Source of the DNA: Thalia democratica
Lineage: Eukaryota
Direction: 5' to 3'
Length of the DNA stretch: 64,000 bases
Assembly (NCBI GenBank): GCA_965202585.1
Contig: OZ241828.1
Coordinates: 17,608,001-17,672,000 of the forward strand
In this document: positions 4,082 to 39,084 of the stretch, in pieces
How positions within the stretch are numbered: the stretch's first letter is position 1
Layout: each line of letters begins with the position of its first letter
Program-made: the position numbers and the translations under genes
The notes under the pieces: model-generated
Databases searched by the model: none
What the model was told of the DNA's origin: nothing
What the model saw: the letters and a program-made list of their open reading frames with translations, nothing else

Positions 4082-5473
4082 CCAGTTGTTTATAGCTGGA
4101 ATCGAACACAGATACCTTCATTAAAATTTTTACGTTTTGTAGATGGTGACTTGAAAACAGAGTAAAATAAACTTTATTTAATAATATTATAAATTCGATA
4201 AATTTAAGGGCATTTATTTAACCCAGTCATCTGGTCTGTAAAGTTTTAAAAATGAGTTTAAAATTTCTAGTTGGAAAAACAACTAAGTAGTTCGAGTTTG
4301 TGAGAGATTTGTGTTGTTTTTTGCAAAAAGTAATTAGCTTTTTTGTGTTGAATTTTATGTTAAAGTGGTTTGGGAAAAGCTAATGGACATGTGTTAGAAC
4401 TAAAATGTATTTGTTGTGTAGATATTATTGCAATTCATTGTTGAACCTTTTTTAAAAATGAGTTTTAAACTTGTACGAGCAAGTTTAAACAAAAGTTTGT
4501 CTTGTTTTCAAGTTGTTCCGCGTTTTGTCAAATTAATTAAATATCGTTCAATCGTTTTAAACATTTTATTAAAAGTTAAAATGAAACTAAAGGCTTCTAA
4601 TAATAAAACTTTCTTGTAACAAAAAGAGTTTTAAACTTCTATAAAAGTTAGCATCTGTAAAGTTTAATTGTTTTGTTTTCAAACAATCGTTTAATTTGAA
4701 CTATAATGGATAATAAACTTTTTAAACTGCATGTAAAAACATTGTTGTTTTTTCGTTCGTCCTTGTAAAAGTATTTGTATGAGGTTATTAAAACTTGTTT
4801 TCGAGTGCATAATCGGTTAATGAAGTGAAATTTCTTAAGTTTATTAAACTTAATTTAGTTTTATATTTAGCAACAATGTCATGTTCAAACTTTAAACTAT
4901 AATATTTAAAGTTTTTTTTTACAATGACCTTTTAATTGCTTGTAACAAACTTTATTGGCTTGTTTTTTGTTATTATACATTTCAGCTTACTTATAAAACC
5001 ACAATTTTAATAAGGTCATTTGAGCTATTAATATCTTATTCAACATTTAAACTCTAACAACAACTTTGTTTTTAACTTTCTTAGAATGTTAAAGTTTTAT
5101 AAATTAGTATAAAGTTCAAGAGCTATATATTTTTACGAAACAAATTTAAGCTTTTGAAATGAATATAATTGTTTGTTTTGTCAACTAACTCATGTTGAAT
5201 GTGAAATGTTTTTAATATACTAAAAGTTTTTATAATGAATAATTAGTTTAAACTGAAGCTATAAATGTTTTTTAAGTTTCTTATAAACATATTTAAAAGT
5301 ACTTGAAAATACTTGAAATAGTATTTTCTTTATATTTTTGCTTGAACTTTTATTGCACTTTCGCACGAACGGCTCGAGAAACGAATCGGCGAGGAGCGGG
5401 GAGGAGACGTATGAACGAGGTGAGGAACGAGGAGATGAAAGAGGAGATGTATGAAGAGACGGATCAGAGGATT

Positions 5474-5896
5474 CCGTAGCGCCAAGAGACCGCTGGGTGA
5501 GGCAAGGAGACGGTTCCGTAGGGCCAACAGACCGCTGGTTGAGGCAAGGAGACGGGTTCCGTAGGGCCAAGAGACCGCTGGTTGAGGCAAGGAGACGGTT
5601 CCGTAGGGCCAAGAGACCGCTGGTTGAGGCAAGGAGACGGTTCCGTAGGGCCAAGAGACCGCTGGGTGAGGCAAGGAGACGGTTCCGTAGGGCCAAGAGA
5701 CCGCTGGTTGAGGCAAGGAGACGGGTTCCGTAGGGCCAAGAGACCGCTGGTTGAGGCAAGGAGACGGTTCCGTAGGGCCAAGAGACCGCTGGTTGAGGCA
5801 AGGAGACGGTTCCGTAGGGCCAAGAGACCGCTGGTTGAGGCAAGGAGACGGGTTCCGTAGGGCCAAGAGACCGCTGGGTGAGGCGAGGAGACGGAT
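5474..5896. repeat. GC-rich 42-bp minisatellite, 10 copies
   Basis: Unit CCGTAGGGCCAAGAGACCGCTGGTTGAGGCAAGGAGACGGTT. Copies 2, 6 and 9 are 43 bp (extra G). It accounts for all ORF-track hits at 5259-5969. Confidence 0.95.
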
Positions 5897-7606: not shown

Positions 7607-7760
7607 GTAGTCCAAGTAATTGAACTATTTGTAGTCCAAGTATTTGGGCAACCTGTAGTACAAGTAGTTGGGCAACCTGTTGTACAAGTAATTGAACTAT
7701 TTGTAGTCCAAGTAGTTGGAAACCTATAGTACAATTAATTGAACAACCTGTAGTCCAAGT
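7607..7760. repeat. 24-bp minisatellite (GTAGTCCAAGTARTTGRRCAACCT-like)
   Basis: Six full units plus a partial here, versus three plus a partial in the later units (e.g. 20259-20341). It underlies the 7425..7790 ORF. Confidence 0.85.
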
Positions 7761-7849
7761 AAATAAATGTTTAATAAAAATGTTGTACATTAAATTTTTT
7801 TTTAATTAAATAGATTTGAAATAATGACCAACCAAATTCAATAGGATTA

Positions 7850-8015
7850 TATAGGCTAGATCCGCATAGTAATTACTAATTGGGATACTGCCAGATCCGG
7901 ATCTAAAAAGGGATTATCATGCTTGATCCGGTATATTATTAATTTGAACAGCCCCGTCAAGGACTAATTTTATCTTGATTCAAACCGCCGATTAAAAACG
8001 TTGTCCACTTCTATA
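7850..8015. mobile_element. Decayed hAT-like MITE relic 3' of each kelch gene
   Basis: GATCCG/CGGATC motifs. The better-preserved paralogous copy at ~20675-20829 ends in TGCCCACCCCTA (reverse complement TAGGGGTGGGCA, a hAT-type TIR). Confidence 0.4.
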
Positions 8016-8130
8016 CTAAACTAAAAAATAAATTTTGTAATACCAGTAAATAAAGTTTAATAAACACTTAAACATTTCGACAAAACACTTTATCACTATA
8101 TGAACACACTTTTGCATACAAACAGATCTT

Positions 8131-9594
8131 TTATATCGATATGGTTTCTAAGAACCATGGCACCTTGACGCACGAAAACCTTTCTTTTGTTTGCGTGGTC
8201 GCGCAGGGTTTTTTCGACCATTCGCTCCCATCAACGTCGTAACAAGCAACGTACGGCTCTCCGCTTTGAAAAATTGCGATCACGCCTCCGAACGCCACCG
8301 CTCCGTGCACGGCCGTTTCCCACAGGTAAGGTGGCGATTTGATGGAAACGAAACTGCCGCCAACGTCGTCGAAAACCTCGCACTCTCCAGCTCCGTCCCC
8401 GAAAACATACAACTTTTGCCGCAAGGCCACCGTGTAGTGACGGCCCCTGCAGCGGATCATGCTCGGCATTGACAGCCACCTGTCGTTGGCGTGATCGTAA
8501 CGCTCCGCAAAGTTCAGCCTCTTGTGCTGCTGATTCATACCGCCGGTGACCACAACCGTTTCGTTGAGAAGCGAGCACGCCGTCACCGCCCTCGCGCCCA
8601 CATTCATGCCGGCCAGTTCTTTCCACTTGAAGCCGGCCGTGTCCAGTTGCAAGCAAGAGCCGTGGACGGGGTACGGATATTCTGGAGACCAGCCCCCGAA
8701 AGTTAAAATTTTGTTGGCAACGGCGCAAACGGAAAAGCTGTTGCGCGGGTCGAAGGCGTCTGCCACTTTCATCCACGTGTTGTTGGCTGGTGAGTACCTT
8801 TCAACGTACATTTCATAGTGCTCACAGCCATCTAAAACGTAAACTTCCCCTTCAATGCAAACTGCTTGGATATCATGTCGTTCTGCCAGCATGAAAGGAA
8901 GAGCTTCTGCGCTTTTAAAATTGCACAACTGGATGACATCTCTACAGTGTTCGACGGGTTTAAAACCAGAAAGATACTTTAAATCACCTAGAACTAGTAA
9001 GTTAGAACTTGCCTTATAAGAATAAAGGCTTATGCAATTGACTCTTAACTTATTACGAAAAAAAAATTTTTGATCATGCAACACATCTTTGAACACTGTA
9101 ATACCTTCATCAGTTTTGTAATACAATGAAGACTCACTGAAAAGTCTTTTTAAAACACCTTTTGGTAGTGAGTAAACACGAAGTTTTAACAAAAAGTTTT
9201 TGGCAAACTTCTCACGTTCCTTAATTTTGTAAGTTAACCAACTTTCGGCTGCATGAAGCACTTTAAGTTCTAACTTTGCAAGTAAACTGGAACTTGAAAG
9301 TAGTTTTACTAGAGAAATATATTACAGTTCTAGAAAACTAATAGTTCCAACTACCTAAGTAAAGCATTCTTCCATGAAATTGATGGAAAATTACGAAATT
9401 GTTTTTAAATTAAAAACTTCTGCTATTTTATACAACATAATTACATTTTTAGCAGAAAACTTTTCTTTTATTTTATCGCACCATTCTTTTTCACAACTCG
9501 TTGTGGTGTTAATACAAATCTGCTTCTGTTTAATATAAAACATAACACCATTTTCATCCAAATTATTACCTTTAAACGAAAGTTTAATTAACAT
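8131..9594 (-). pseudogene. Kelch-like (BACK + Kelch repeats) copy 1, pseudogene
   Basis: ATG at 9594 (MLIKLSFKGNNLDENGVMFY...). In-frame nonsense codons at 9391-9393 (TAA), 9355-9357 (TAG) and 9322-9324 (TAA), where other copies encode K, L, E. The 376-aa ORF-track entry starts at a GTG (Val). Confidence 0.85.
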
Positions 9595-10566
9595 ATCTGT
9601 TGTAAATTATAAACAAAATGATTTAAAACTCTCAAGTTAGTTTTTAGTTGCTGATAAAATTTAGATTATTTTACCATTTAACGTAAAAAGTAAGATTTTT
9701 TTAAACTTAATAACGTAAACTACTGATCATAGTTTTTTTGGACTTTGGCAAATTTTATGTGTGTTATCTTGCTTGAGACACAGAAACATATTTAAGTTCA
9801 ATAAAGAAAGTGTACTTTAAACATTTGTTGTTATAATATATTGAATAATATAAATGAATACTAGGTTATCGAAATTGAACTATTCAAATTACTTTTGAAC
9901 TAACTAAAATTTTATATTTTGAATTATTAGCTTAACTGTATGATTAAATCAAAATGTTTGAAAACAACTTTATTCTCCATTTTTCAATCCTTATGGAATT
10001 TAAAACTGTAACAGGATATCAACTTGATTACTGTTTAGATTTGGTTTGAAGTTTTGAGCTAAAAGTTAATTCAAGCGGTTAAGAGAAAGCTTGCAAATTA
10101 ATATTTTATTTACTTATATATTATATAAATTTATATAACAAATAAAATGATACTTAAGGCACTTTGTCATTTTTTAGCTATGACTGTTACTGGTTGTATG
10201 TTTTTTCTTTTGTTTATTATGTTTACCATTTCGTATTTTACGAGAGCTTGTTATGTGAAGTTTTACTAAAATTATGTGCTATAAAGTGAGTTTTATGTTT
10301 ATATAAATGAAACAAAAGTTGAGTTTGTCAGCTTATTATAATTTAATAGTTTGTTTTTCATTAGAAGAAATAGGTAAATTAGTAAAACAAATAAATGAAG
10401 TTTTTGGTAATTGAAAAGTAAAATTACAAACTATTTGTTTACTGTAGTTTGCATAGAAACAAAAAATGTTGTGAAAATTTAGAAAGAAATGCATTTGAAA
10501 GGGCATATTACGTAAGATGTATATTTTAAGAAAAAAAAATTTCGCTCAGTATTAGTGCTAAGCTTT

Positions 10567-10695
10567 TAGGGTGGAGGCGGGGACGTGGTGGTTACGGGAG
10601 AGCGACAGCGTGTGGTGAAGAACCCGTAAACTTTTTTAATTTTTTTTTTCTAAAGTCGATATGGTGCAATCTTGTGGGTTTGCGACACCTAGCGG
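10567..10695. promoter_or_regulatory. GC island, candidate promoter (unit 1)
   Basis: GC/CpG-rich patch in ~20% GC DNA. Sp1-like GGAGGCGGGG at 10573 and CTCF-like GCGACACCTAGCGG at 10682-10695. Lies between the divergently oriented kelch and plus-strand exons. Confidence 0.5.
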
Positions 10696-10798
10696 ATAAA
10701 AAAATTAGAAATTTAACTTTGATTTTTATTTAAAATAAACTAATTTCGCGATGTGTTTAAAAATCGTAATCAATTAGGCAGTTTTACAATTTTATTAG

Positions 10799-12258
10799 AA
10801 GTCAGAGCTTAAAAACCTCGGGAACTTCTTTAAGATAATGGAAAGATTTACGGTTTTATATTTAATTAAAGATTAACGTTATTATAATGAAGTAAAGTCT
10901 AAGTTTTAACAAGTTTTTTAAAGTCAACAAGTTAAACTGCATATATTATAAAATCTATGAAAAACTGTGAAAATTTATTAAATTTTATTGCTTTGATTTT
11001 AAGTAAATGAGCTATATTAAATTTATTTAAACTATAACAACATAAATAACAAGCTATTTAAAAACTAACATTAATTGAAGCAATTACAGCAAAAGCTAAA
11101 CTACAAAGTAAAATTTCATTTTTAAATGAACTAATTAATGTTTTTTTTTTAATTCGGATAAACTTAATAATAAATGCATATTTCTAAGTACAACATTTCT
11201 AAAACAGCACTCATTACAGCAGATAAATCAAGGTAATGGAGTACAATACAAAACCAGAAAAAGTGGGTTTGAATCTTTATGTTAAGCTTAAAGCCATGTG
11301 AAATTTTATATTTATTATCACGCTTCTTATACATAACTCGTAATTATTTGTCCTTTAAAGTTCAAATAATATTTTTGTTTGATAGTACGATTGTTATAAT
11401 TAACTTTAGCAAAATCGATCTAACACTTGTAAAAGGTTGCCGTACCCTCTACTTCACAAATGTATAACAAATAGTTTTTCTTGTAAACATTATTGTTGTT
11501 TTCTTTTTAAAGTTTGCAGTTTGTTTTAACACGCTTAAACGTATTTTAAAAAAGCTATACATAAAAGCTGTATCTTAAATTAAGAAAAGCTGTATAGAAA
11601 TTAGTAAAAGCTTAGAAGTAGAGCAACGAATAAAACTTATGAAAAGTTATTAACTCATGTTTGTTTGTTATTCAAAAAACGAGATTTTTAAGTAAATTTT
11701 CTGTCTATGTATGAACTCAAGTTAAATTTATTAAAAATTTTACAATAAAAATGATTTTTTTTTTCAAAGCTTATAAAAGTTTCAGTAATTCTTCCACTTT
11801 CATAAAATACTAACGTACAAAATTAAAGGTTCGTATTTAACTAAACATAAATTTTTTTGAATCAAACATTGTTTGTTTTTTCTCTGGTTGGAGTAAACTT
11901 TACATATAAATGCTTATAGTTCCTAAAACAGTAGTCATTACAGTCATAAAAGCAGATTAAGCGAGGCGATGGAGTAAAGTACCCACCAAGACAAAACGGG
12001 TCTGAATCTCGGCAAAAATTATATCAAGCTTAACTTTACATTAAATTTTTATTATAATTATCAGGCTTTTAATACATAATTTGTAACCACTTATCCTTTA
12101 TACTTTAAAATCGTGTTTCTTATTGATAATACAATTATTTCATGTAACTTTAGCCCGCGGAAAACTTTTTATATATTCTGCTCGCAACTCTTTCTAAAAA
12201 GAATGGCCTTTTACCTATAAAAGGTTGCCGTACCTTGTATTTTACTCGTGTTAAATAA
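10799..12258 (+). pseudogene. Cryptic spliced small gene, duplicated, A-type (frameshifted)
   Basis: Exon 10799-10852 (KSELKNLGNFFKIMERFT), an exon at ~11208-11280, and terminal codons GCRTLYFTNV* (11435-11467) and GCRTLYFTRVK* (12223-12258). Relative to B there is a 46-bp deletion in the first terminal exon and a +1 A in the second. Confidence 0.45.
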
Positions 12259-12637
12259 ATAGTCTATTTTCTAAATAGTATCTTTTTTTTTTATTATAAA
12301 ATGTATTATCTATGTCTGGTGTACTACCTGACAAAAAGCAAGTCGTGTTTGTTATGCGCAAATTATAAGTAGTTTATAAAAAATATCACAGTAAAGTAAT
12401 GTTCAAACAATGTATAAATAATAGAAATTAAAAGTAGAACGGATTTTACATTAAAGTGTGTATTTTGATTTTAAAATTAGCCGCAATAAAATAAACTAAA
12501 TATTAAATAAACTCTACTTAACAATTTATCTTTCAACTTGTCATAAGCAAAAAGCTAAATGTCTATTAATCGGATGTTTGAAATAGTAGCTATAGCCAGT
12601 TAACATAAGCTTTAATTCTTTTTGAAAAAGATTCATT

Positions 12638-12675
12638 TAAGCACTGACGATGTCTTTGACCGAAACTTAGTTTGT
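12638..12675 (+). ncRNA. Degenerate minimal type-I hammerhead ribozyme motif (Penelope-type), unit A
   Basis: CTGACGA-T-GTC-TTT-GAC-C-GAAAC-TTA-GT-T: core CUGANGA and GAAA, 3-bp stem II, minimal stem III, only a 3-bp stem I, followed by AAATAAAA. Confidence 0.55.
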
Positions 12676-14338
12676 AAAATAAAATCTTGAAAGAATAAAT
12701 TCATTATTTCTCCTATAGTAGCTAGTTAAGTGCTTTATCTAAACCCGAAATCGTTAAACTTAACATAATAATTCTAAAAGTTAAGTATTGAGTACACAGA
12801 GATTTTATAGAAACTAAATACCTATACAATAAAGATATCTTTAGACCCCAACTAACATTATACAAGAAAGTATTTTTGTAGTTTTTTGTGTACGCAGTAT
12901 ATGTGTTTAAAGTTGTTTCAATTTAGTTGAAAAATAACCGAAAGGCTTGCGTTAAATTTAAAATAATGAGCTGAAACAATTTTTTTATTAATTTAAATGA
13001 CACAAAAGTTTCGTTGTTAAAATTTGTTGGTATACTGTAACTTTCTACCAAAATTTATGTATAGTTTAGCAGTTTTAAATTCATCAAAGAGCTGCGTTTA
13101 AAGTTTTAAAAAAATATTTGGTATCCAGTTAAACTTCTCAATAACAGGTTCAGAATGATAAAGTAGATAATTTCTACTTATTTAAGCTATAATTTTCAGC
13201 TTCAAGCTGAGTAATAATTAAATTGTATTTTATCGCGTTCATGTGATTTCTTTAGCAAGTTTCTTACTTTTGTAAGTTTATTATATAACCTCTAACTTAT
13301 TTTGATAATATACTGCATTGACAAAAGTAAAAATATACAAAATACAACCAGGCTTGGTAGAAACAATTTCCAGCAAAGTTTGCCATAAAAAGTGTCATTC
13401 GACTTTAGAACAAGTTTATTTCATTTATACTGTAAAAATCAGATTTCATTACATAAAATTAGTAGCTTTTAACTTCCCGAAACACGACATTGTTAGAGTG
13501 AAAACTTGCAGTAGCTAATAACTCGTACTTTAACAGTGTTTATTTTACCAAAATTTAGTTTTAAAATAGGATATTTTAGTGATAGCTGCAGCCCGCAGCA
13601 ATCTTATTCTTTATAAAGTGCAGCCCGTGAATAACTCAACATAGAAAAATGACTATTTAATTGTCAAGTCTGCCAATTTAACTGATAATGAAATGCTGTA
13701 GCTACATAACTTTTAATTGAAATTAACACAAATTTATTTTTTTAGGAAAAATTGTTATAAATAAATTTTTGTTATGTTTTCACACCAGAGCCCTACAGTG
13801 TTATTTGACGTGAGAACCTAAACAAATCACATTATATTTTAATAACATGTTCATAAACAAGCACGAAGAAATTTGCAAAGCAGGTCCTTTTTTAAATACA
13901 TACATGGACAGCAAAATATTTCAGTTTAAACGCCGTTGATCAAGAAAACAAAAATTTTTTTAGAACCTTAACTACGTTCGTAAAATCTACCCTTCAGTAA
14001 TGATATTAACAACTGCAAGACTACCATGATAAAAAAAACTAGTACATACTAATTATCTCGTTAAATATAATTAACCGAATTATGCTTATTAAACGTCTTG
14101 GTCTTTACCCTTTTCGTGTTCGATGCATTAACAACTTTTTATAACAACTTCAGTAAGGGACTATTTCTTATCAGAATTATGCAGTGCACAATAATTGTAA
14201 ATACAAAAACATTTAAATTGATTTTTGAACTTTTGTAACCTTATGTAATTCTGTAACTTTATTTTAGATAAAAAACAGTTTATAACAGAACACAATTTAT
14301 TTAATACACGAAAAAAACATAATATTTGAAGATTGCAT

Positions 14339-17300
14339 TCATTCCACGTTTTTCACACGTCCAACGTCAGCAACAAGTGAAGACAATCGGAAAGACCTGT
14401 AAGAATAATATACAATTAATAAAACGGAAAAATTATTGATGCTTTTTAAACTAAAAATTGGTAATATTTCATTTAATAATTAAAACATATTAGTGAACAG
14501 ATGCCGTGAAAAGTGGCTGAAACTCAATATAAACGTAACATGTAATAAAAATGCATCCTTCAAACTTGTAGCTTTTGCAGTCAAAACAACAGTTTATTAA
14601 CAATTTACAAATAAAAAAATGCAAGCAAGCAATACAAACTAAATAAATTTATCAATTTTAATAATTAAACGTGTTCAAAGTTTTGATAAAATCATATAAC
14701 TTAGCTATTAAATACCACAAAGAAATAAATTATAGTTCTGTGAAACAAAATAGCTTCCACAGCTTCAAACTTTTTAATAACCTCTATTTCACAAGTACTA
14801 TATTTTAGTCTCTTTAAAATTAATTGTAGACTTGTAACAAAAATTATAGTAAAACAATCAAAAAACATACAAGTTTAAAATGTTAGCTACAAATTCTAAA
14901 TGTTATTGAAAAATAACACCAGCTTTTTAATTTGACTTAAGTAAGTTTATCTCAAAGCTTATAAAATTTATACATATGTAAACAACAAATAAATAAAGAC
15001 GTTTGAATGATTAAAATTAACAACACTTTTTTTTACTTTTAACAAGTTTGATTGAGCAATGCTTACAAATTTTCTTTACAAAAGATAATAAATACTCAAA
15101 AAATAAATTAATAGAACAAAAATTCGAGTAAATTTGAGAAAAATAATTATAATAGCAATCGAAACAAACGATATAAAATTTATAAATTATAAAATCTAAA
15201 TAAGATAATTAGAAGGAGCATAGACTATTTAAAAGCTTTGTTTTTCAATCATAGTTGTCACAACTGTTATTAAATTTAGTAAATAAAAATTTATTTACAT
15301 TAAAACAGATTAAAATATTATAATAAATTGGACAAAATAAAATGAGAAAATACTGCACTATTTGTTGGTCTAGTAATTTAAACAAATGTAATTTTAATAG
15401 CTCTCAAATTTGCTATGATACACCGCTAAGTTAAACATTTTATTTAATTTTGGTTAAATTAATAAATACATATTTTTTCTTATGTTCAAAATAAACAGTC
15501 GATTTATAAATCAAATTCAAAACTCTATTTAACTATATAAAACACCAAGCACTAAAGAAACACTTTGGATTTATTTAAAAAATTTCAGTATCAGATTATT
15601 TTTTCTATATGTTGAACAAAACAGTTTTTAAATTATTTGTAATTGTAATTACTTACTTATTGTTACACTTTGCATAATTAATGAGATTTAGTGACAGAGA
15701 GGACCACCGGTTCCGCATCAGTGATTTGTCATCGGTGAACCAATTCAAGACACTGAAAAAAAATTATAAATATTACAATTCATAGAGTTGATTTAAACTG
15801 GTATTAAATATTTAGTTAAGCATTTTATTTAAACACAATAGGTATATAGAATATGTAAAAATTTGTGGCCACATTGTTAAATATTAAGCATGTTCCATCA
15901 CAATTATCATTGTTTTCTTATGATTTCTTAATAAGATAACTAGCAAACTAAATTTCAATAAATTTCTTTAAAAATATAAAAACTAAGTATAATGTGCAAC
16001 AGTTGTATGAAAAATGTTAGCAGGAATAATTAAAACGACATATTCTGTAAAAAAAGTTTCGGAGGTTATTGTTCTGATAAGTTCAAATTTGTCAGTAAAC
16101 TGAACTGTATAATTATTTCTTGACATACAGATTAAAATGTCAAGTTGACTAAAAGGTTTGTAGTTTGTTGTAGATGAAAAGTTTATAGAAGTTCAAATGA
16201 CCAGTTTGTAGAGAGCATATTTATTTTTTATAAACTTTGTAAATTGAAACTGTGAAAAACACTCTTGAAAGTATTAATGATTATAAATAACTAATTTTTG
16301 TACTAATATGTACTAACTAATATGTACTATGATTACTTAATTTAAACTACTGATATGAAAACACACTGTTCAAATATTACTTACATTTCAGGCCACCTGT
16401 ATTGAACAATAAATTTTACTACTATTTTTTATGCTTTACTACACCACTATACATATTAAACACAACATTATAAGATACTAAGTTTTACAACTACTATATT
16501 TTAGTCTCTTTAAACTTAATTGTAGATTTGTATACAGTATATACAAGTTAACATGTAATAAAAAAGCATCCAACAAACTTGTAGCTTTTGCAGTCAAAAC
16601 TACAGTTTGATAAAAATTGACAAAAAATTAAATGCAAGCAAGCAATACAAACTAAATATATTTATTAATTTTAATAATTATATGTGTTTAAAGTTTAATT
16701 AAAATCATACAACTTATAAATAAAGACGTTTGAATGATTTAAATTACCATTTTATTGAAATTAACAACACTTTTTATTTTTAACAAGTTTGTTTGAGCAA
16801 TGCTTACAAATCTTAACTAACTTATTTTCCTTTCAAAAGATGATAAATACTCACATAATTAATTTACCAAACAAAAATTCGAGTTTAAATTATTAAAATA
16901 GAAATCAAAACAAACAAATGAAATTAATCAATTATCAAACCTAAATAAGATATTAGAAGGAGCATACACTATTTAAAAGCTTTATTTTTTAATCATAGTT
17001 GTTGCAACTGCTAATAACTTTTTCTCTACTAAATTTTAGTACATTAAAACAGTTTATTATATTATAATAAATTTGACAAAATTAACATTGCTCAATATGA
17101 GAAAATACTGCACTATTTGTTGGTTTAGTAAGTTATACATATGTAACTTTAATAGTTATCAAGTTTGCTATGATAGACCGCTTAGATAAACATTTTACTT
17201 TACTTTGATAATATCAATAAAAACATCTTTTTTCTTATGTTTAAAATAAACAGTAAATTTATAAACCAAAACTCTATTTAACCATAAAAAAAAACCCCAA

Positions 17301-18904
17301 GCACTAAAGAAACACTTTGAATTTATTAAAAAAATTTCAGTATCAGATTATTTTCTATAAGTTGAACAAAACAGTTTTTAAATTATTTGTAATTGTAAAT
17401 ACTTACTTATTGTTTCACTTTGCATAGTCAATGAGATTTAGTGACAGAGAGGTCCACCGGTCAGTGATTTGTCATGGTCAGTGATCAAATTTAAGAACAG
17501 AAACTGAAAAAAAAAAAAAAAGTTATAAATAATATAATACATAAAGTTGATTTAAACTGGTATTTTTATTAAAATAGTCATGTGTGTGCATGTCTAACAA
17601 CTTAAGTAAAGTACACACAACTGTTATGCTAACAGACATTATAAATTTGTTTAAAAAATCATAAAAATATTACTTTTAATAAATGTGTTTTACTCATTAT
17701 AAATACAAACAAGTTGGTTTACATTAAAAATAATTCTCATAGTATAAAAACAACATTGCCACTCTATAAAACAAAAAACTATCCTTAGTGACCTTGTACA
17801 GTCTTAAGTCATCCTGTGCTTTTTTTCAAATCATATTAAAAATCTTAATTTAATTGAAATAAACTTTTCAAATCAATATGAATCATGTTTTAAAATAAAA
17901 CAGGTTATAAAATATCAAAACATTGTTACTGGACCAACTTTATCTGTATCAAGATCTAGAAAAAAAAATAGCCTAAGACTTTTAAAAACATAAAACTATT
18001 TTGAGTTGTCCTTACTCAACCTTAGTTAGATTTAAAAAATTTAAACTCTGCTGAACAATATTGAGTATTTTGAATGTATGGCAAGCATGATACAAAATAC
18101 TTATAAACTTTTGGTAAAAATGAAAAGTATTAATAATTTGATCTATTTTTACAACATTACACTTATATAAAGATAAAATGTTTTAAGAGAAAGTGTTGCT
18201 TAAGAAAAAATTAATTTTATATATTTAGATATATAAATGTAAAAGTACTGGGTGTAAGGGACTGGGATGGGGGCTTATAAATTTATATGCTCATCTGTTT
18301 ACCAGAGGTCTTAACTACTTTATCTACTTTATAGATAGCTGATGTATCAATTAAATGTTATTTGTCATCAGTCACCTAAAGGTTAGAATTTTTTTCTATA
18401 CCCTTAATAGGTTTTAACCAAAACGCTTTGTAAAATTTTAGCATGGGTGGCATACTTTCAGAAAAAAAGAATAGTTTAAGTTTGTGTATCAGGTTAAACC
18501 TTTTTTAAAAACTTGTAAATAGTTATATAAAATAGTTATTTACTGCTATGATCAAATTATATGTTAATGAAACTAAAGCTTTTAGCTTTTGTGTTTTACC
18601 AGGTAAAATGTATTATACTGTTATCTTAATCTTCAAATTACATACATGGTTTGTCTTATAGTATGGCTCTGTTTGATATATAAGAGTTGAACAACTCTAA
18701 GTTGTAGATAATAATACTATCATTGAAATATACTCACCACTGTACTATACCAAAAACTTGCAGAAATAAATTTATTGGGTGGATTATATAAGAAGATATT
18801 CTTGTAAACAAACTTTCAAAACACTAGGTGCTTATTTCTTTTTTTAAGTATTCGCTGTTCAAATACTAGTCATATCACTTACAACAGTATTGAGTATTGA
18901 CATT
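14339..18904 (-). pseudogene. Multi-exon minus-strand locus with microexon, unit A
   Basis: Exons with AG/GT boundaries and matching phases: 18904-18883, 18800-18738, 18375-18303, 17955-17922, 16396-16385, 15752-15657, 14396-14339. One in-frame TAA in the 73-nt exon. Confidence 0.5.
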
Positions 18905-20946
18905 CTATATGAAAAATATTTACTTTTTTTATAACCGATAAATATCAATATGTACGGAACCCAATTTACAAATTAACTAAAAAAAAATTACGTTTAAAAT
19001 AACCATGCTATAAAATTAAAAATCAAAAAAATTAAATTCTTGCAATATTCACAAATTTAAACATACTATCAAAAAATTACAAAATGTTAAATTTGACTAA
19101 TAAAACTAGGTTTTAATAAAAACATTTTTAATAGATTTCTTTATAAAAATTGTTACAACAGAAAGTTATTTTTACATCTATAAAACTCGCACAAATAAAC
19201 GTTTTAGAACGTTTGTATAATGTTTCAATTTTTTTTTAAATAGAGTAGTTTTATCCGTGAAAAACTATGTGAATGAAAGTTAAACTTCAAAACAGGAAAA
19301 GAAAGCAGTTACTAGTTAATGTTATATTTACCAGACCAAAAAAGTACAGAAAAACAAGTTTAATATTTTTTTGTTTAACAATACATATGGTTGAAAAAGT
19401 TTAATTTTTGCTTCAGAATTTAAAGAATATTAAAATTTATTTTGGATTTTTTACATAACAGTTTATACCATATATTTTGAAATTTAAAAGCGTCAATTAG
19501 CCTAAACAAGTTAAAACGTCTTATTTTTGTATTGTATGTCTATAAAAAAAACAGTAGTTAAGTTGGTGTCTATTGTTAATGTTATTTTAGTTTATAAACT
19601 TTTCAGTTGTTGGTTTTATGAGTATACATGTAAAACCGCGGTTATTTTTCTTAATGATTTTTGTAAAAAAAAATATCTTTAAAACTTAACTTTTATCAAT
19701 ACTTGTGCAAATGATATAAAAACTCCAAACTTAAATATTAAATTAATTCAATAACTGCTTACTTAGATGCTTTAAACAGCTTTCTTATGATATGATTATG
19801 ATATGATTATGATTTACTAAACTTAAGTAAAAGAAAAAAAATGTAGCATAATAAAGTTAAATAAGCATTTGTAAGCAAATTTTAAAATTTTTCTAGTAAC
19901 TAATATTGTTTCAAACAAAAAAGTTTATGTAAAAAAAAAATTACAAAACGAATAGTAAAAACTTTTTTAACTTTTTATATCATATATCAATATAAAACAC
20001 AGCAAACAGCTTGATGAGTAGTGATGACACGACAATAAAGGAATTGCTTATTTATGGTTGATACTCATTTTTTCTTAAAAGTTTTATCTTCAATTTACTA
20101 CTCTTTGTATTAGCACTTATATATGCTACCTTTTGTTAACTTCTTACACTTAAATAATGATTTAGCCGCCACTAATAGCTGTAATAGTGCACCAAGTAGT
20201 AGGTTAAATGAAATGCTAAGTATGTGGGGAAGTAGTGGTCACAAAACTTCGGCAACAAGTAGTCCAAGTAATTGAACTATTTGTAGTCCAAGTAGTTGGA
20301 CAACCTGTAGTACAATTAATTAAACAACCTGTAGTCCATGTAAATAAATGTTAAATAAAAATGTTGTATATTAATTTTTTTTTCATTTAAATAGATTTGA
20401 AATAATGACCAACAAAATTCAATAGGATTATATCGGCTAGATCCGCATAGTAATTACTAACTGGGATACTGCCAGATCCAGATCTAAAAAGGGATTATCA
20501 TGCTTGATCCGGTATATTAGTTATTTGAACAGCCCCGTCAAGGACAAATTTTATCTTGATTCGAACCGCCGATTAAAAACGTTGTCCACTTTTATACTAA
20601 ACTAAAAAAGAAATTATGTACTACCAGTAAATAAAGTTTAATAAGATTACCAAGTTCATAAGATTATAGTATTATAGTATATCGGCTAGATCCGTATAGT
20701 AATTTCTAACCGGATCTAAAAAGGGATTACCATGCTTGATCCTTAAACTTAATCCGGTATAGTAGTAATTTGTACTGCCCTGCCAAGGACTAATTTTATC
20801 ATGATCCGGACCGCCGATGCCCACCCCTATACTAAACTAAAAAAGAAGTTTTGTAATACTAGTAAATAAAGTTTAATAAACACTTAAACATTTTGATAAA
20901 ACACTTTATCACTATATGAACACACTTTTGCATACAAACAGATCTT

Positions 20947-22359
20947 TTATATCGATATGGTTTCTAAGAACCATGGCACCTTGACGCACGAAAACCTATC
21001 TTTTGTTTGCATGGTCGCGCAGGGTTTTTTCGACCATTCGCTCCCATCAACGTCGTAACAAGCAACGTGAGGCTCTCCGCTTTGAAAAATTGCGATCACG
21101 CCTCCGAACGCCACCGCTCCGTGCACGGTCGTTTCCCACAGGTAAGGCGGCGATTTGATGGAAACGAAACTGCCGCCAACGTCGTCGAAAACCTCGCAAT
21201 CTCCAGCTCCGTCCCCGAAAACATACAACTTTTGCCGCAAGGCCACCGTGTAGTGACGGCCCCTGCAGCGGATCATGCTCGGCATTGCCAGCCACTTGTC
21301 GTTGGCGTGATCGTAACGCTCCGCCCAGTTCAGCCTCTTGTGCTGCTGATCCATACCGCCGGTGACCACGACCGTTCCGTTGAAAAGCGCGCACGCTGTC
21401 ACTGCCCTCGCGCCCACCTTCATTTCGGCCAGCTCTTTCCACTCGAAGCCGGCCGTGTCCAGTTGCAAGCAAGAGCCGTGGACGGGGTACGGATATTCGG
21501 GAGACCAGCCCCCGAAAGTTAAAATTTTGTTGGCAACGGCGCAAACGGAAAAGCTGTGGCGCGCGTCGAAGGCGTCTGCCACTTTCGTCCACGTGTTGTT
21601 GGCTGGTGAGTACCTTTCAACGTACATTTCATAGTGCTCACAGCCATCTAAAACGTAAACTTCCCCTTCAATGCAAACTGCTTGGATATCATGTCGTTCT
21701 GCCAGCATGGGGGGAAGAGCTTCTGCGCTTTTAAAATCGCACAACTGGATGACATCTCTGCAGTATTCGACGGGTTTAAAACCAGAGAGATACTTCAAAT
21801 CTCCTAGAATTAGTAAGTTAGAACTTGCCCTATAAGAATAAAGGCTAATGCAATTGACTCCTAACTTATTACGAAAAAAAAAATTTTGATCATGCAACAC
21901 ATCTTTGAACACTGTAATACCTTCATCAGTTTTGTAATACAATGAAGACTCACTGAAAAGTCTTTTTAAAACACCTTTTGATAGTGAGTAAACACGTAGT
22001 TTTAACAAAAGGTTTTTGGCAAACTTACCACGTTCCTTAATTTTGTAAGTTAGCCAACTTTCGGCTGCACGAAGCACTTTAAGTTCTAACTTTGCAAGTA
22101 AACTGGAACTTGAAAGTAGTTTTACTACAGAAATATATTCCAGTTCTAGAAAACTTATAGTTGCAACTACCAAAGTAAAGCACTCTTCCATGAAATTGAT
22201 GGAAAATTTCGAAATTGTTTTTAAATCAAAAACTTCTACTAATTTATACAACATAATTACATTTTTAGCAGAAAATTTTTCTTTTATTTTATTGTACCAT
22301 TCTCTTTCACAACTCGTTGTGGTGTTAATAAAAATCTTCTTCTTTTTAATATAAAACAT
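20947..22359 (-). CDS. Kelch-like protein (BACK + ~5-6 Kelch blades, BTB absent or vestigial), copy 2, 470 aa
   Basis: BACK-type FLELEYISVVKLLSSSSL..ELKVLRAAESWL and Kelch signatures (VYVLDG..VERYSP..W; ILTFGG; VVVTGG..AERYD..KW; KLYVFG). Intronless. The upstream ATG (22410) is cut off by TAG at 22375-22377. Confidence 0.85.
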   Translation of the reverse strand: MFYIKKKKIFINTTTSCEREWYNKIKEKFSAKNVIMLYKLVEVFDLKTISKFSINFMEECFTLVVATISFLELEYISVVKLLSSSSLLAKLELKVLRAAESWLTYKIKERGKFAKNLLLKLRVYSLSKGVLKRLFSESSLYYKTDEGITVFKDVLHDQNFFFRNKLGVNCISLYSYRASSNLLILGDLKYLSGFKPVEYCRDVIQLCDFKSAEALPPMLAERHDIQAVCIEGEVYVLDGCEHYEMYVERYSPANNTWTKVADAFDARHSFSVCAVANKILTFGGWSPEYPYPVHGSCLQLDTAGFEWKELAEMKVGARAVTACALFNGTVVVTGGMDQQHKRLNWAERYDHANDKWLAMPSMIRCRGRHYTVALRQKLYVFGDGAGDCEVFDDVGGSFVSIKSPPYLWETTVHGAVAFGGVIAIFQSGEPHVACYDVDGSEWSKKPCATMQTKDRFSCVKVPWFLETISI

Positions 22360-23365
22360 AACTCCATTTTTACCCTAATTATTACCTTTAAAAGAAAGTT
22401 TGATTAACATACTTTTTGTAAATTATAAACAAATTGATTTAAAACTCTCAAGTTAGTTTTTAGTTGCTGATAGAATTTAGGTTATTTTACTATTTAACGT
22501 AAAAAGTAAGATCTTTTTAAACTTAATAACGTATACTACTGATCATAGTTTTTTTGGACTTTGGCAAATTTTATGTGTGTTATCTTGCTTGAGACACAGA
22601 AACATATTTAAGTTCAATAAAGAAAGTGTACTGTAAACATTTGTTGTTATTATATATTGAATAATATAAATGAATACTAGGTTATCGAAATTGAACTATT
22701 CAAATTACTTTTGAACTAATTTAAATTTTATATTTTAAATTATTAGCTTAACTGTATGATTAAATCAAAATATTTGAAAACAACTTTATTCTCCATTTTT
22801 CAATCCTTATGGAATTTAAAACTGTAACAGGATATCAACTTGATTACTGTTTAGATTTGGTTTGAAGTTTTGAGCTAAAAGTTAATTCAAGCGGTTAAGA
22901 GAAAGCTTGCAAATTAATATTTTATTTACTTATATATTATATAAATTTATATATCAAATAAAATAATACTTAGGGCACTTTGTCATTTTTTAGCTGTGAC
23001 TGTTACTGGTTGTATGTATTTCCTTTTGTTTATTATGTTTACCATTTCGTATTTTACGAGAGCTTGTTATGTGAAGTTTCACTAAAATTATGTGCTATAA
23101 AGTAAGTTATATGTTTATATAAATGAATAGCTTATTATAATTTGATAGTTTGTTTTTCATTAGAAGAAATAGGTAAATTAGTTAAACAAATAAATGAAGT
23201 TTAAAGTAATTGAAAAGTAAAATTACAAACTATTTGTTTACTGTAGTTTGCATAGAAACAAAAAATGTTGTGAAAATTTAGAAAGAAATGCATTTGAAAG
23301 GGCATATTACGTAAGATGTATATTTTAAGAAAAAAAAATTTCGCTCAGTATTAGTGCTAAGCTTT

Positions 23366-23495
23366 TAGGGTGGAGGCGGGGACGTGGTGGTTACGGGAGA
23401 GCGACAGCGTGTGGTGAAGAACCCGTAAACTTTTTTAATTTTTTTTTTTCTAAAGTCGATATGGTGCAATCTTGTGGGTTTGCGACACCTAGCGG
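23366..23495. promoter_or_regulatory. GC island, candidate promoter (unit 2)
   Basis: Essentially identical to 10567-10695. Confidence 0.5.
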
Positions 23496-23598
23496 ATAAA
23501 AAAATTAGAAATTTAACTTTGATTTTTATTTAAAATAAACTAATTTCGCGATGTGTTTAAAATTCGTAATCAATTAGGCAGTTTTACAATTTTTTTAG

Positions 23599-24313
23599 AA
23601 TTCAGAGCTCAAAAACCTCGGGAACTTCTTTAAGATAATGGAAAGATTTACGGTTTTATATTTAATGAAAGATTAGCGTTATTATAATGAACTAAAGTCT
23701 AAGTTTTAACAAGTTTTTTAAAGTCAACAAGTTAAACTGCGTATATTATAAAATCTATGAAAAACTGTGAAAATTTATTAAATTTTATTGCTTTGATTTT
23801 AAGTAAATGAGCTGTATTAAATTTATTTAAACTATAACAACATAAATAACAAGCTATTTAAAAACTAACATTAATTGAAGCAATTACAGCAAAAGCTAAA
23901 CTACAAAGTAAAATTTCATTTTTAAGTGAACTAATTAATGTTTTTTTTTGAATTCGGATAAACTTAATAATAAATGCATATTTCTAAGTACAACATTTCT
24001 AAAACAGCACTCATTACAGCAGATTAATCAAGGTAATGGAGTACAATACAAAACCAGAAAAAGTTGGTTTGAATATTTATGTTAAGCTTAAAGCCTTGTG
24101 AAATTTTATATTTATTATCACGCTTCTATTACATAACTCGTAATTATTTGTCCTTTACAGTTCAAATAATATTTTTGTTTGATAGTACGATTGTTATAAT
24201 TAACTGTAGCCCGCCTAAAACTTTTCTTCTATGTTCCGCGAGCAACTACTTCTAGCAAAATCGATCTAACACTTGTAAAAGGTTGCCGTACGCTCTACTT
24301 CACAAATGTATAG
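23599..24313 (+). CDS. Candidate three-exon microprotein gene, B-type, frame intact
   Basis: Exons 23599-23652 (phase 0-0), 24008-24080 (or to 24032; phase 0-1) and 24210-24313 (phase 1 to stop). Splices to NSELKNLGNFFKIMERFT-HSLQQINQGNGVQYKTRKSWFEYL-SRLKLFFYVPRATTSSKIDLTLVKGCRTLYFTNV*. Several synonymous differences between paralogues. Confidence 0.5.
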
Positions 24314-24995
24314 CAAATAGTTTTTCTTGTAAACATTATTGTTGTTTTCTTTTTAAAGTTTGCAGTTTGTTTTAACACGCTAAAACGTATTTTAAAAGAG
24401 CTATACATAAAAGCTGTATCTTAAATCAAGAAAAGCTGTATAGAAATCAGTAAAAGCTTAGAAGTAGAGCAACGAATAAAACTTATGAAAAGTTGTTAAC
24501 TCATGTTTGTTTGTTATTCAAAAAAAGAGATTTTTAAGTAAATTTTCTGTCTATGTATGAACTCATGTTAAATTTATTAAAAGTTTACAATAAAAATGAT
24601 TTTTTTTTTCAAAGCTTACAAAAGTTTCAGTAATTCTTCCACTTTCATTAAATACTAACGTACAAAATTAAAGGTTCGTATTTAACTAAACATAAATTTT
24701 TTTGAATCAAACATTGTTTGTTTTTTCTCTGGTTGGAGTAAACTTTACATATAAATGCATATAGTTCCTAAAACAGTAGTCATTACAGTCATAAAAGCAG
24801 ATTAAGCAAGGCGATGGAGTAAAGTACCCACCCAGACAAAACGGGTCTGAATCTCGGCAAAACTTATATCAAGCTTAATTTTACATTAAACTTTTATTAT
24901 AATTATCAGGCTTTTAATCAAAATTTGTAACCACTTATCCTTTATAGTTTAAAATCGTGTTTCTTATTGAATACAATTATTTCATGTAACTTTAG

Positions 24996-25099
24996 CCCGC
25001 GGAAACTTTTTATATATTCTGCTCGCAACTCTTCCTAAAAAGAATGGCCTTTTACCTATAAAAGGTTGCCGTACCTTGTATTTTACTCGTGTAAAATAA
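24996..25099 (+). other. Paralogous terminal exon of the duplicated small gene (B-type)
   Basis: TTTAG|CC CGC GGA AAC..., phase 1, open to RGNFLYILLATLPKKNGLLPIKGCRTLYFTRVK*. No in-phase donor found for its upstream QIKQGDGVKYPP exon. Confidence 0.4.
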
Positions 25100-25479
25100 A
25101 TAGTCTATTTTCTAAATAGTATCAATTTTTTTTTATTATAAAATGTATTATCTATGTCTGGTGTACTACCTGACAAAAAGCAAGTCGTGTTTGTTATGCG
25201 CAAATTATAAGTAGTTTATAAAAAATATCACAGTAAAGTAATGTTCAAAAAATGTATAAATAATAGAAATTAAAAGTAGAACGGATTTTACATTAAAGTG
25301 TGTATTTTGATTTTAAAATTAGCCGCAATAAAATAAACTAAATATTAAATAAACTCTACTTAACAATTTATCTTTCAACTTGTCATAAGCAAAAAGCTAA
25401 ATGTCTATTAATCGGAAGTTTGAAATAGTAGCTATAGCCAGTTAACATAAGCTTTAATTCTTTTTGAAAAAGATTCATT

Positions 25480-25517
25480 TAAGCACTGACGATGTCTTTG
25501 ACCGAAACTTAGTTTGT
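25480..25517 (+). ncRNA. Degenerate hammerhead motif, unit B
   Basis: Same sequence as 12638-12675. Confidence 0.55.
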
Positions 25518-27206
25518 AAAATAAAATCTTGAAAGAATAAATTCATTATTTCTCCTATAGTAGCTAGTTAAGTGCTTTATCTGAACTCGAAATCGGTAAA
25601 CTTAACATAATAATTCTAAAAGTTAAGTATTGAGTACACAGAGATTTTATAGAAACTAAATACCTATACAAAAAAGATATCTTTAGACCCCAACTAACAT
25701 TATACAAGAAAGTATTTTTGTAGTTTTTTGTGTACGCAAAAACGTATATGTGTTTAAAGTTGTTTCAATTTAGTTGAAAAATAACCGAAAGGCTTGCGTT
25801 AAGTTTAAAATAACGAGCTGAAACAATTTTTTTATTAATTAAAATGACACAAAAGTTTCGTTGTTAAAATTTGTTGGTATACTGTAACTTTCTACCAAAA
25901 TTTATGTATAGTTTAGCAGTTTTAAATTAATCAAAGAGCTGCGTTTAAAGTTTTAAAAAAATATTTGGTATCCAGTTAAACTTCTCAATAACAGGTTCAG
26001 AATGATTAAGTAAAAACTAATAGATAATTTCTACTTATTTAAGCTATAATTTTCAGCTTCAAGCTGGGTAATAATTAAATTGTATTTTATCGCGTTCATG
26101 TGATTTCTTTAGCAAGTTTCTTACTTTTATAAGTTTATTATATAACCTCTAACTTATTTTGATAATATACTGCATTGACAAAAGTAAAAATATACAAAAT
26201 ACAACCAGGCTTGGTAGAAACAATTTCCAGCAAAGTTGCCATAAAAAGTGTCATTCGACTTTAGAACAAGTTAATTTCATTTATACTGTAGAAATCAGAT
26301 TTCATTATATAAAATTAGTAGCTTTTAACTTCCCAAGTTGCCAAAACACGACATTGTTAGAGTGAAAACTTGCAGTAGCTAATAACTCGTACTTTAATAG
26401 TGTTTATTCTACCAAAATTTAGTTTTAAAATAGGATATTTTAGTGATAGCTGCAGCCTGCAGTAATCTTATTCTTTATAAAGTGCAGCCCGTGAATAACT
26501 CAACATAGAAAAATGACTCTTTAATTGTCAAGTCTGCCAATTTAACTGATAAGGAAATGCTGTAGCTACATAACTTTTAATTGAAATTAACACAAATTTA
26601 GTTTTTTTAGGAAAAATTCGTAATAAATTTTTGTTAGGTTTTCACACCAGAGCCCTACAGTGTTATTTGACGTGAGAACCTAAACAAATCACAATATATT
26701 TTAATAACATGTTCATAGTTTATAAACAAGCACGAAGAAATTTGCAAAGCAGGTCCTTTTTTAAATACATACATGGACAGCAAAATATTTCAGTTTAAAC
26801 GCCGTTGATCAAGAAAACAATAATTTTTTTGGAACCTTAACTACGTTCGTAAAATCTACCATTCAGTCATGATATTAACAACTGCAAGACTACCATGATG
26901 AAAAAACTAGTACATACTAATTATCTCGTTAAATATAATTAACCGAATTATGCTTATTAAACGTCTTGGTCTTTACCCTTTTTTTGTTCGATGCATATTC
27001 AACTTTTTATAACAACTTTAGTAAGGGGCTATTTCTTATCAGAATTATGCAGTGCACAAATAATTGTAAATACAAAACATTTAAATTGATTTTTCAACTT
27101 TTGTAACCTTATATTATTCTGTAACTTTATTTTAGATAAAAAACAATTTATAACAGAACACAATTTATTTAATACACAAAAAAAACATAATACTTGAAGA
27201 TTGCAT

Positions 27207-32793: not shown

Positions 32794-34593
32794 CTATATG
32801 AAAATATTAACTTTTTTTATAACCGATAAATATCAATATGTACGGAACCCAATTTACAAATTAATTTAAAAAAAAAAACGTTTAAAATAACCAATCTATA
32901 CAATTAAAAATCAAAAAAATTAAATTCTTGCAATATTCACAAATTTAAACATACTATCAAAAAATTACAAAATGTTAAATTTGACTAATAAAACTAGGTT
33001 TTAATAAAAACATTTTTAATAGATTTCTTTATAAAAATTGTTACAACAGAAGTATTTATTTTTACATCTATAAAACTCGCACAAATAAACGTTTTAGAAC
33101 GTTTGTATAATGTTTCAATTTTTTTTTTTAAATAGAGTAGTTTTATCCGTGAAAAACTATGTGGATGAAAGTTAAACTTCAAAACAGGAAAAGAAAGCAG
33201 TTACTAGTTAATGTTATATTTACCAGACCAAAAAAGTACAGAAAAACAAGTTTAATATTTTTTTGTTTAACAATACATATGGTTGAAAAAGTTTAATTTT
33301 TGCTTCAGAATTTAAAGAATATTAAAATTTATTTTTGGAATTTTTACATAACAGTTTATACCATATATTTTTAAATTTAAAAGCGTCAATAAACCTAAAC
33401 AAGTTAAAACGTCTTATTTTTGTATTGTATGTCTATAAAAATAAACAGTAGTTAAGTTGGTGTCTATTGTTAATGTTATTTTAGTTTATAAACTTTTCAG
33501 TTGTTGGTTTTATAAGTATGCATGTAAAACCGCGGTTATTTTTCTTAATGATTTTTGTAAAAAAAATATCTTTAAAACTTAACTTTTATCAATACTTGTG
33601 CAAATGATATAAAAACTCCAAACTTAAATATTAAATTAATTCAATAACTGCTTACTTAGATGCTTTAAACAGCTTTCTTATGATATGATTATGATTTACT
33701 AAACTTAAGTAAAAGAAAAAAAATGTAGCATAATAAAGTTAAATAAGCATTTGTAAGCAAATTTTAAAATTTTTCTAGTAACTAATATTGTTTCAAACAA
33801 AAAAGTTTATGTAAAAAAAAAAATTACAAAACAAATAGTAAAAACTTTTTTAACTTTTTATATCATATATCAATATAAAACACAGCAAACAGCTTGATGA
33901 GTAGTGATGACACGACAATAAAGGAATTGCTTATTTATGGTTGATACTCATTTTTTCTTAAAAGTTTTATCTTCAATTTACTACTCTTTGTATTAGCACT
34001 TATACATGCTACCTTTTGTTAACTTCTTACACTTAAATAATGATTTAGCCGCCACTAATAGCTGTAATAGTGCACCAGGTAGTAGGTTAAATGAAATGCT
34101 AAGTAGGTGGGGAAGTAGTGGTCACAAAACTTCGGCAACAAGTAGTCCAAGTAATTGAACTATTTGTAGTCCAAGTAGTTGGACAACCTGTAGTACAATT
34201 AATTGAACAACCTGTAGTCCAAGTAAATAAATGTTAAATAAAAATGGTGTACATTAATTTTTTTTTCATACAAATAGATTTGAAATAATGACCAACAAAA
34301 TTCAATAGGATTATATCGGCTAGATCCGCATAGTAATTACTAATTGGGATACTGCCAGATCCAGATATAAAAAGGGATTATCATGCTTGATCCGGTATAT
34401 TATTAATTTGAACAGCCCCGTCAAGGACTAGTTTTATCTTGAATCGAACCGCCGATTAAAAACGTTGTCCACTTTTATACTAAACTAAAAAGAAATTTTG
34501 TAGTACTAGTAAATAAAGTTTAATAAACACTTAAACATTTCGACAAAACACTTTATTACTATATGAACACACTTTTGCATACAAACAGATCTT

Positions 34594-38705: not shown

Positions 38706-39084
38706 ATAGTCTATTTTCTAAATAGTATCTTTTTTTTTTATTATAAAATGTATTATCTATGTCTGGTGTACTACCTGACAAAAAGCAAGTCGTGTTTGTT
38801 ATGCGCAAATTATAAGTAGTTTATAAAAAATATCACAGTAAAGTAATGTTCAAACAATGTATAAATAATAGAAATTAAAAGTAGAACGGATTTTACATTA
38901 AAGTGTGTATTTTGATTTTAAAATTAGCCGCAATAAAATAAACTAAATATTAAATAAACTCTACTTAACAATTTATCTTTCAACTTGTCATAAGCAAAAA
39001 GCTAAATGTCTATTAATCGGATGTTTGAAATAGTAGCTATAGCCAGTTAATATAAGCTTTAATTCTTTTTGAAAAAGATTCATT

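Follow-up and report, generated by a model that had tools for sequence, protein, structure and literature searches.

Organization of the array

The window analysed here is a 64-kb stretch of Thalia democratica DNA (C4:17608001-17672000), taken from a genome of 802 Mb with about 25% G+C; positions given without a contig refer to the window. Self-comparison of the window revealed a tandem array of units of about 13 kb, which belong to two alternating types, A and B, that are about 96% alike. One A and one B unit together make up a higher-order unit of about 26.45 kb, repeated at 99.4% identity. The array extends over at least 270 kb (C4:17.619-17.880 Mb) and holds 11 B-type and at least nine A-type units. 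Every unit carries an intronless BACK+kelch ORF on the minus strand and, upstream of this ORF on the plus strand, two modules of about 0.4 kb, an upstream one termed m1 and a downstream one termed m2. The features of the array are as follows.

7668-20644: A unit, as delimited by self-comparison
20748-34130: B unit, as delimited by self-comparison
20947-22359, minus strand: intronless BACK+kelch ORF of the B unit, 470 aa, head-to-head with the modules
11140-11500, plus strand: m1 of the A unit, with a net 46-nt deletion and the GCRTLYFTNV tail at 11435-11467
11875-12290, plus strand: m2 of the A unit, with TATAAAT at 11905-11911, TCATTAC at 11935-11941 and the GCRTLYFTRVK tail at 12223-12258
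23599-23652, plus strand: proposed exon 1 of the B unit, with an ATG at 23638, evolving at the background rate
23945-24345, plus strand: m1 of the B unit, with the proposed exon 2 (24008-24080) and exon 3 (24210-24313) inside, evolving near-neutrally
24725-25125, plus strand: m2 of the B unit
37587-38737, plus strand: m1 and m2 of the second A unit, a copy of 11140-12290 at +26447
50046-51572, plus strand: proposed exon 1, m1 and m2 of the second B unit, 99.9% identical to 23599-25125

A preliminary description of this DNA had proposed a small gene co-amplified with kelch and present in two paralogous copies. The co-amplification is borne out, the modules and the kelch ORF of the minus strand being parts of a single repeat unit, and the modules are real paralogues. 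The kelch ORF of the A unit (8131-9261) is shorter than that of the B unit, with 376 aa from a GTG compared to 470 aa from an ATG, in agreement with a 5'-truncation noted separately in the preliminary description. No further gene was found in the unit, where neither a meaningful ORF of 50 aa or more nor a homeodomain motif was detected. A homeobox gene, or any other gene in the unit, was therefore rejected as a candidate.

Two old paralogous modules

The two modules of each unit are old paralogues, with an identity of 66-72% between m1 and m2 along the full length, including the segments that had been described as introns. Further copies of the whole stretch, 84-92% identical, are found in other arrays and at single loci, namely C5:79.4-79.7 Mb, C309, C4:0.386 and 0.417 Mb, C4:79.99 and 80.04 Mb, and C5:20.09 Mb, the last with m2 only. 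At this last locus (L078, C5:20090037-20093138), a solitary m2 and 1.5 kb or more of its downstream flank are 92-93% identical to the unit, while about 1.3 kb upstream has no match to the unit, m1 included. The m2 of L078 is also devoid of about 60-70 nt of the unconstrained middle described below.

On the branch leading to the present array, private changes amount to 0.06-0.12 per site in the m1 segment versus 0.007-0.026 in the flanks. A cluster of changes private to the m1 of this array, at 24019-24034, makes m1 resemble m2 (GCAGATTAA.CAAGG), suggesting a short conversion tract derived from the m2 next to it. An LTR or TRIM-like pair of direct repeats was also considered and rejected, as inspection of 24314-24738 by eye revealed no TG..CA end, primer-binding site or polypurine tract.

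The three-exon reading frame is private to the B-type units

The gene proposed in the preliminary description comprised three exons and encoded 63 aa. The letters on which it was built are confirmed. The two quoted codon strings, which run from GGT TGC CGT ACC to TAA and encode the GCRTLYFTNV and GCRTLYFTRVK tails, are present at 11435-11467 and 12223-12258, as are the silent B-unit variants ACG, GTA and TAG at 24281-24313 and 25064-25099. The B-unit exons 23599-23652, 24008-24080 and 24210-24313 have GT-AG borders and are in phase. From the ATG at 23638 they yield 15+73+104 = 192 nt, that is 63 codons and a stop; this total is phase arithmetic only. In the searches, the exons were used one by one.

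A 63-aa microprotein gene is, however, not supported by the other copies. Neither the start codon nor the complete ORF is conserved among the paralogues, and the start codon, the open frame of exon 2 and the GT donors are all private to the B-type units of the present array. In all other arrays the ATG of exon 1 is replaced by AAA, AAC or AAG, and the donors read GC or AT in other arrays. The other m1 copies read ..CAA TTA CAT TAA GGC.. in exon 2, resulting in an in-frame stop. Protein similarity between the upstream exons had been put forward as well. The peptides QINQGNGVQY and QIKQGDGVKY indeed read so in the B unit (the A m2 reads QIKRGD instead), but the likeness of QINQ to m2 lies in the array-private patch and is most simply explained by conversion.

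The frame is also not preserved, with frameshifting indels in many copies. In the A unit, where the preliminary description had located the gene, both copies are frame-broken, which it had missed: the net 46-nt deletion in m1 takes out the acceptor together with 38 nt at the start of exon 3, and an extra A after CCCGCGG in m2 causes a +1 frameshift. The m1 copies of C5, C309 and L075 have a 5-nt deletion inside GCRT, and the core of the C5 m2 is replaced. The indel that separates m1 from m2 inside exon 3 is 3 nt long and in frame. In m2, in-frame stops are found upstream, and no in-frame ATG occurs between the putative start site and the stop. Judged from these copies, the 63-aa ORF is a chain of short open stretches that is complete only in the B-type units of the present array.

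In the A unit, the 46-nt deletion joins the frame of the proposed intron to the GCRTLYFTNV tail, creating an unspliced ATG ORF of 62 codons at about 11279-11467; from the same ATG, the B unit has an overlapping unspliced ORF of 58 codons in another frame (24078-24254). These overlapping ORFs show how easily ORFs of such a size arise here. Two other gene models were tried. An alternative start (ATG GA|GTAAAG) joined to 24996 gives, by phase reasoning, 15-16 codons only and is not conserved. An exon on the minus strand, where the core contains AAG|GTACGG, is not favoured, as the minus frames are stop-ridden or not conserved between m1 and m2.

Codon-level selection

Purifying selection had been proposed on the basis of the silent differences; it holds for m2 at the nucleotide level, as shown below, but not at the protein level across exon 3. 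GY94 on 14 distinct intact exon-3 sequences gave an omega of 0.905 (2dlnL of 0.09 against omega = 1), so that with more copies exon 3 is indistinguishable from neutrality in the codon test. The first 22 codons gave 1.56 and the last 11 codons (KGCRTLYFT..) 0.27, with a 2dlnL of 5.15 and a nominal P of about 0.02 for a partition chosen post hoc. The NG86 pairwise pN/pS between m1 and m2 was 0.63-1.05 in the proposed frame, which is no better than the 0.73-1.07 of the two off-frames. In the m2 clade, replacement changes (29) outnumber silent ones (6), with 22, 7 and 7 changes at codon positions 1, 2 and 3. Silent sites are so scarce in m2 that an omega of about 0.4 is still compatible with these counts. 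The 5' part of m2, block 1, has 1 silent and 13 replacement changes in the same frame, together with in-frame stops and a 1-nt indel polymorphism among the arrays. No frame of block 1 can be coding.

The local pattern of silent changes is unusual. In neutral simulations using the module's own substitution spectrum, a run of six silent changes in any frame had a P of 0.003, and a silent share of 0.29 compared to the expected 0.13 had a P of 0.01. The pattern is confined to the last 11 codons or so, and part of it is made up of changes private to the m1 of this array (TTT>TTC, ACT>ACA and ACC>ACG). An unbiased 26-mer search, allowing up to three mismatches, gave 13 events with 6, 0 and 7 changes at codon positions 1, 2 and 3; when worked out by hand, the same-register antisense frame accounts for this distribution about equally well. 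The signal of the silent-only stretch is local, extending over the last 11 codons beside a conserved core of 17-18 nt (AAAGGYTGCCGTACC), and is at best the relic of an ancestral coding exon.

Homologues and distant copies

The search for homologues, suggested in the preliminary description as a check, found none in the databases searched. This result and the whole-exon omega close to 1 are two of the three outcomes that the preliminary description had named as speaking against its gene. Using the exon peptides (37-42 aa) as queries, neither a Pfam family nor a word-search match was obtained, and among 1.84 billion representatives the only match was a low-complexity repeat protein. The Atlas score of 0.77 was below the lead level, and no metagenome pattern was found. 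The exon-3 peptide has a low protein-likeness score, and its AlphaFold model, based on an 11-row alignment, showed no confident fold, with a pLDDT of 54.6.

Within the genome, a profile of the exon-3 peptide retrieved distant copies from at least seven independent loci at genome-wide E values of 3e-9 to 1e-4. These exon-3-like copies are located at C2:58337767, C9:10983100, C661:26823, C6:57175130, C5:43004869 and C8:51852496 and in an array of about 26 copies on C10, and most of them can be read over 33-54 aa without a stop. The exon-3 frame is uninterrupted in m1, on C2 and C9, and in the C10 array. The antisense control frame contains stops in m1 and in the distant copies recovered from C2 and C9. 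This control frame is also open in all close m2 copies, and frame openness among close copies is therefore meaningless. In the C10 array (C10:8.917-9.190 Mb), about 26 exon-3-like frames of 50-51 aa are evenly spaced at about 12-13 kb and read KGCSNLDFT at the motif. Judged by these frames, the array is a third, more distant paralogue type.

Two constrained blocks in m2

The substitution rate along the modules was profiled by parsimony over ten lineages from at least three contigs, with rates expressed relative to the flanks. Both m1 and the proposed exon 1 evolve near the background rate, whereas m2 is divided into three parts, with the following positions in the B unit.

24736-24872, plus strand: m2 block 1, 0.48 times the flanking rate (Poisson P = 1.5e-5)
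24873-24959, plus strand: m2 middle, 0.98 times the flanking rate, indel-rich
24960-25100, plus strand: m2 block 2, 0.46 times the flanking rate (Poisson P = 7e-6)

Gaps are found in 71 of the 88 aligned columns of the middle, compared to 2 of 138 and 8 of 144 in the two blocks. Block 1 is 95-100% identical in all of the approximately 50 m2 copies, while whole units are 86-92% alike; a translated-frame search did not detect it in m1 or at the distant loci. Judged by rates and gaps, m2 is under purifying selection, and by the codon counts given above this constraint is independent of the reading frame.

Block 1 contains TATAAAT at 24750-24756 and an initiator-like TCATTAC at 24780-24786, the A of which is at position 32 counted from the first T of the TATA motif; about 90 nt of the block follow TCATTAC. 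TCATTAC is invariant in the aligned m2 lineages, and TATAAAT is intact in all but L078, L089 and L090. In m1 the TATA motif is degenerate and its spacing to the initiator is 44. No canonical GT donor is present at the end of block 1. Block 2 begins with about 35 conserved nt in front of an AG at 24994-24995, followed by an open frame at 24996-25099, which ends in a TAA (25097-25099) overlapping an AATAAA; the conservation stops there. The TATA, initiator and AATAAA motifs are short and common in DNA of 75% A+T.

The end of block 2 forms a perfect 8-bp hairpin at 25074-25093 (TATTTTAC-TCGT-GTAAAATA), which is absent from m1. It is because of this hairpin that TLYFTRVK of the plus frame is mirrored by TIYFTRVK on the minus strand. 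Just downstream of m2, conservation is also high at 25140-25200 (..TCTATGTCTGGTGTACTACCTGACAAAAAGCAAGTCG..), where the minus strand contains CAG|GTAGTA, which resembles a splice site. RNA folding against shuffled sequences yielded no signal, with z scores of -0.08 for block 1, -1.98 for block 2 and +0.74 for the whole unit, and no Rfam match was found in the modules at E values up to 10. A structured RNA, snRNA or SL RNA was dropped as a candidate, given the absence of both an Rfam match and a fold signal.

Proposed nature of the modules

Based on the rate profile and the motifs, we propose, with a probability of about 45%, that m2 represents a small non-coding element under constraint, which is probably a compact transcription unit, and that m1 is a decaying copy of it. 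An old tandem duplication of a module of about 0.4 kb would have given rise to the pair found in each 13-kb unit. Subsequently, m2 would have been retained through selection acting directly on its nucleotides rather than on a reading frame, leaving two blocks of about 135-140 nt each at about half the local neutral rate and a middle that is free to vary and to lose sequence. The most economical reading of the motifs is a predicted compact RNA polymerase II unit that spans about 340 nt and has a middle resembling an intron. Its product would be a short RNA with no demonstrable coding constraint, and m1 would be the decaying paralogue of m2.

Such an element resembles lineage-specific conserved non-coding elements and short lncRNA genes in its blockwise, frame-independent and indel-free conservation, and in having a TATA motif about 30 nt before an initiator-like motif and an AATAAA end. 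Unlike short lncRNA genes, m2 has no canonical donor, and it is known from sequence alone, through paralogous arrays of one genome and not through different species. The modules are also similar to pseudo-exons in birth-and-death tandem arrays, given the kelch co-amplification, one decaying copy, deletions, frameshifts and conversion patches; in contrast to dead duplicated gene fragments, m2 still appears to be constrained.

The first alternative, which we consider unlikely but worth keeping in view, is a real micropeptide family whose last coding exon is the 3' block, with the conserved C-terminus KGCRTLYFT, and whose upstream part has been mis-modelled, for example through an unknown start, non-canonical splicing or trans-splicing. 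Trans-splicing occurs in tunicates. The members would be m2, some m1 copies and the loci on C2, C10, C9, C6 and C661. The omega of 0.27 in the last 11 codons, the excess of silent changes (P = 0.01), the silent run (P = 0.003) and the 0 of 13 changes at second positions in the 26-mer search are all consistent with this, and so are the distant profile matches with open frames at seven or more independent loci, the stops of the antisense control frame in distant copies, the in-frame 3-nt indel between m1 and m2, and a rate of about 0.43 times neutral at the replacement sites of m2. However, omega is 0.905 over the whole exon and 1.56 in its first 22 codons, and the changes in m2 are mostly replacements. 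Moreover, m2 lacks an in-frame ATG between the putative start site and the stop, its best conserved part, block 1, is non-coding in any frame, many copies are frameshifted, no homologues were found and the protein-likeness score is low. The partition at 11 codons is post hoc, and the same-register antisense frame fits about equally well.

We give roughly one chance in four to the 3' block being, or once having been, a coding exon in an orphan family of small proteins. A more specific version is somewhat more doubtful: an orphan micropeptide family at ten or more loci or arrays, often alongside amplified kelch units, with the 3' block as the terminal coding exon, a KGCRTLYFT-type tail and an unconventional start by non-canonical splicing, trans-splicing or a non-AUG codon. 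Compared to known smORF and micropeptide genes, the modules share the short open frame, the two paralogues, the locally silent pattern and the compact layout from promoter to poly(A) signal. They differ in having no conserved start, an omega of about 0.9 over the exon, frameshifts, no homologues in the databases searched and a best conserved part that is non-coding.

The same data would also be explained by cis-regulatory DNA, the blocks of m2 then being pieces of an enhancer or promoter for a neighbouring gene with no transcription unit of their own. Short conserved blocks that are frame-independent, free of indels and devoid of an RNA-structure signal would be expected of such DNA, and at C5:20.09 Mb m2 has travelled with at least 1.5 kb of downstream flank and no m1. 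We regard this as improbable, as the TATA-initiator geometry, the conserved stretch before the AG and the abrupt loss of conservation at AATAAA suggest exon borders more than enhancer borders, and no target gene was found in the unit.

It is also improbable, and slightly more so, that nothing in the modules is functional, that is, that they are relics evolving neutrally and that gene conversion between arrays, or chance, accounts for the low divergence in the m2 blocks. Mosaic ancestry is indeed visible in the private changes of the m1 segment (0.06-0.12 per site versus 0.007-0.026 in the flanks), and the m1 patch is conversion-like. The two troughs, however, appear in ten lineages on at least three contigs with the same sharp edges and a full-rate stretch between them, and such shared borders are unexpected for conversion tracts.

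It is highly improbable that the 63-aa ORF of the B-type units represents a functional gene of very recent, de novo origin that is restricted to this array. Only in the A/B lineage did the ATG arise (A>T at 23639) and the in-frame TAA disappear (T>C at 24029), and only there are both donors GT; exon 3 shows 5 silent against 1-2 replacement changes on this lineage, and eleven identical or near-identical B copies exist. However, about half of the array (at least nine A-type units) lost the ORF through the 46-nt deletion with no visible consequence, exons 1 and 2 evolve at or above the background rate, the model was picked freely among the abundant GT/AG sites of 75% A+T DNA, and ORFs of similar length overlap it, such as the unspliced 58-62 codons from the ATG at about 24078 in B and about 11279 in A. 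Like chance or proto-gene ORFs in A+T-rich DNA, the complete ORF is lineage-private, arose by few point changes, which provided an ATG and eliminated a stop, and is overlapped by ORFs of similar length; unlike de novo candidates, its exon 3 is old and common to distant paralogues, so the ORF is not wholly de novo.

The locus serves mainly as a calibration case: in DNA of 75% A+T, short exons that chain in phase and a brief run of silent differences between two paralogues are insufficient for calling a gene. Upon the addition of about a dozen independent paralogous lineages, most of the signal was gone. What remains is a sharply bounded two-block element, apparently under selection in a massively amplified kelch unit, and a weak coding-like signal in the last 11 codons. 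If the tail motif is translated, it would represent an orphan peptide family tied to the kelch arrays.

Other repeats in the window

Two further repeats were found in the window. An internal repeat of about 800 bp, with 81-86% identity between its copies, is present in every unit (15010-15805, 16754-17564 and copies of these). Just outside the first unit of the array, a G+C-rich tandem repeat at 5259-5866, made up of PQPAVSWPYGTVSL-type units, is open in several frames.
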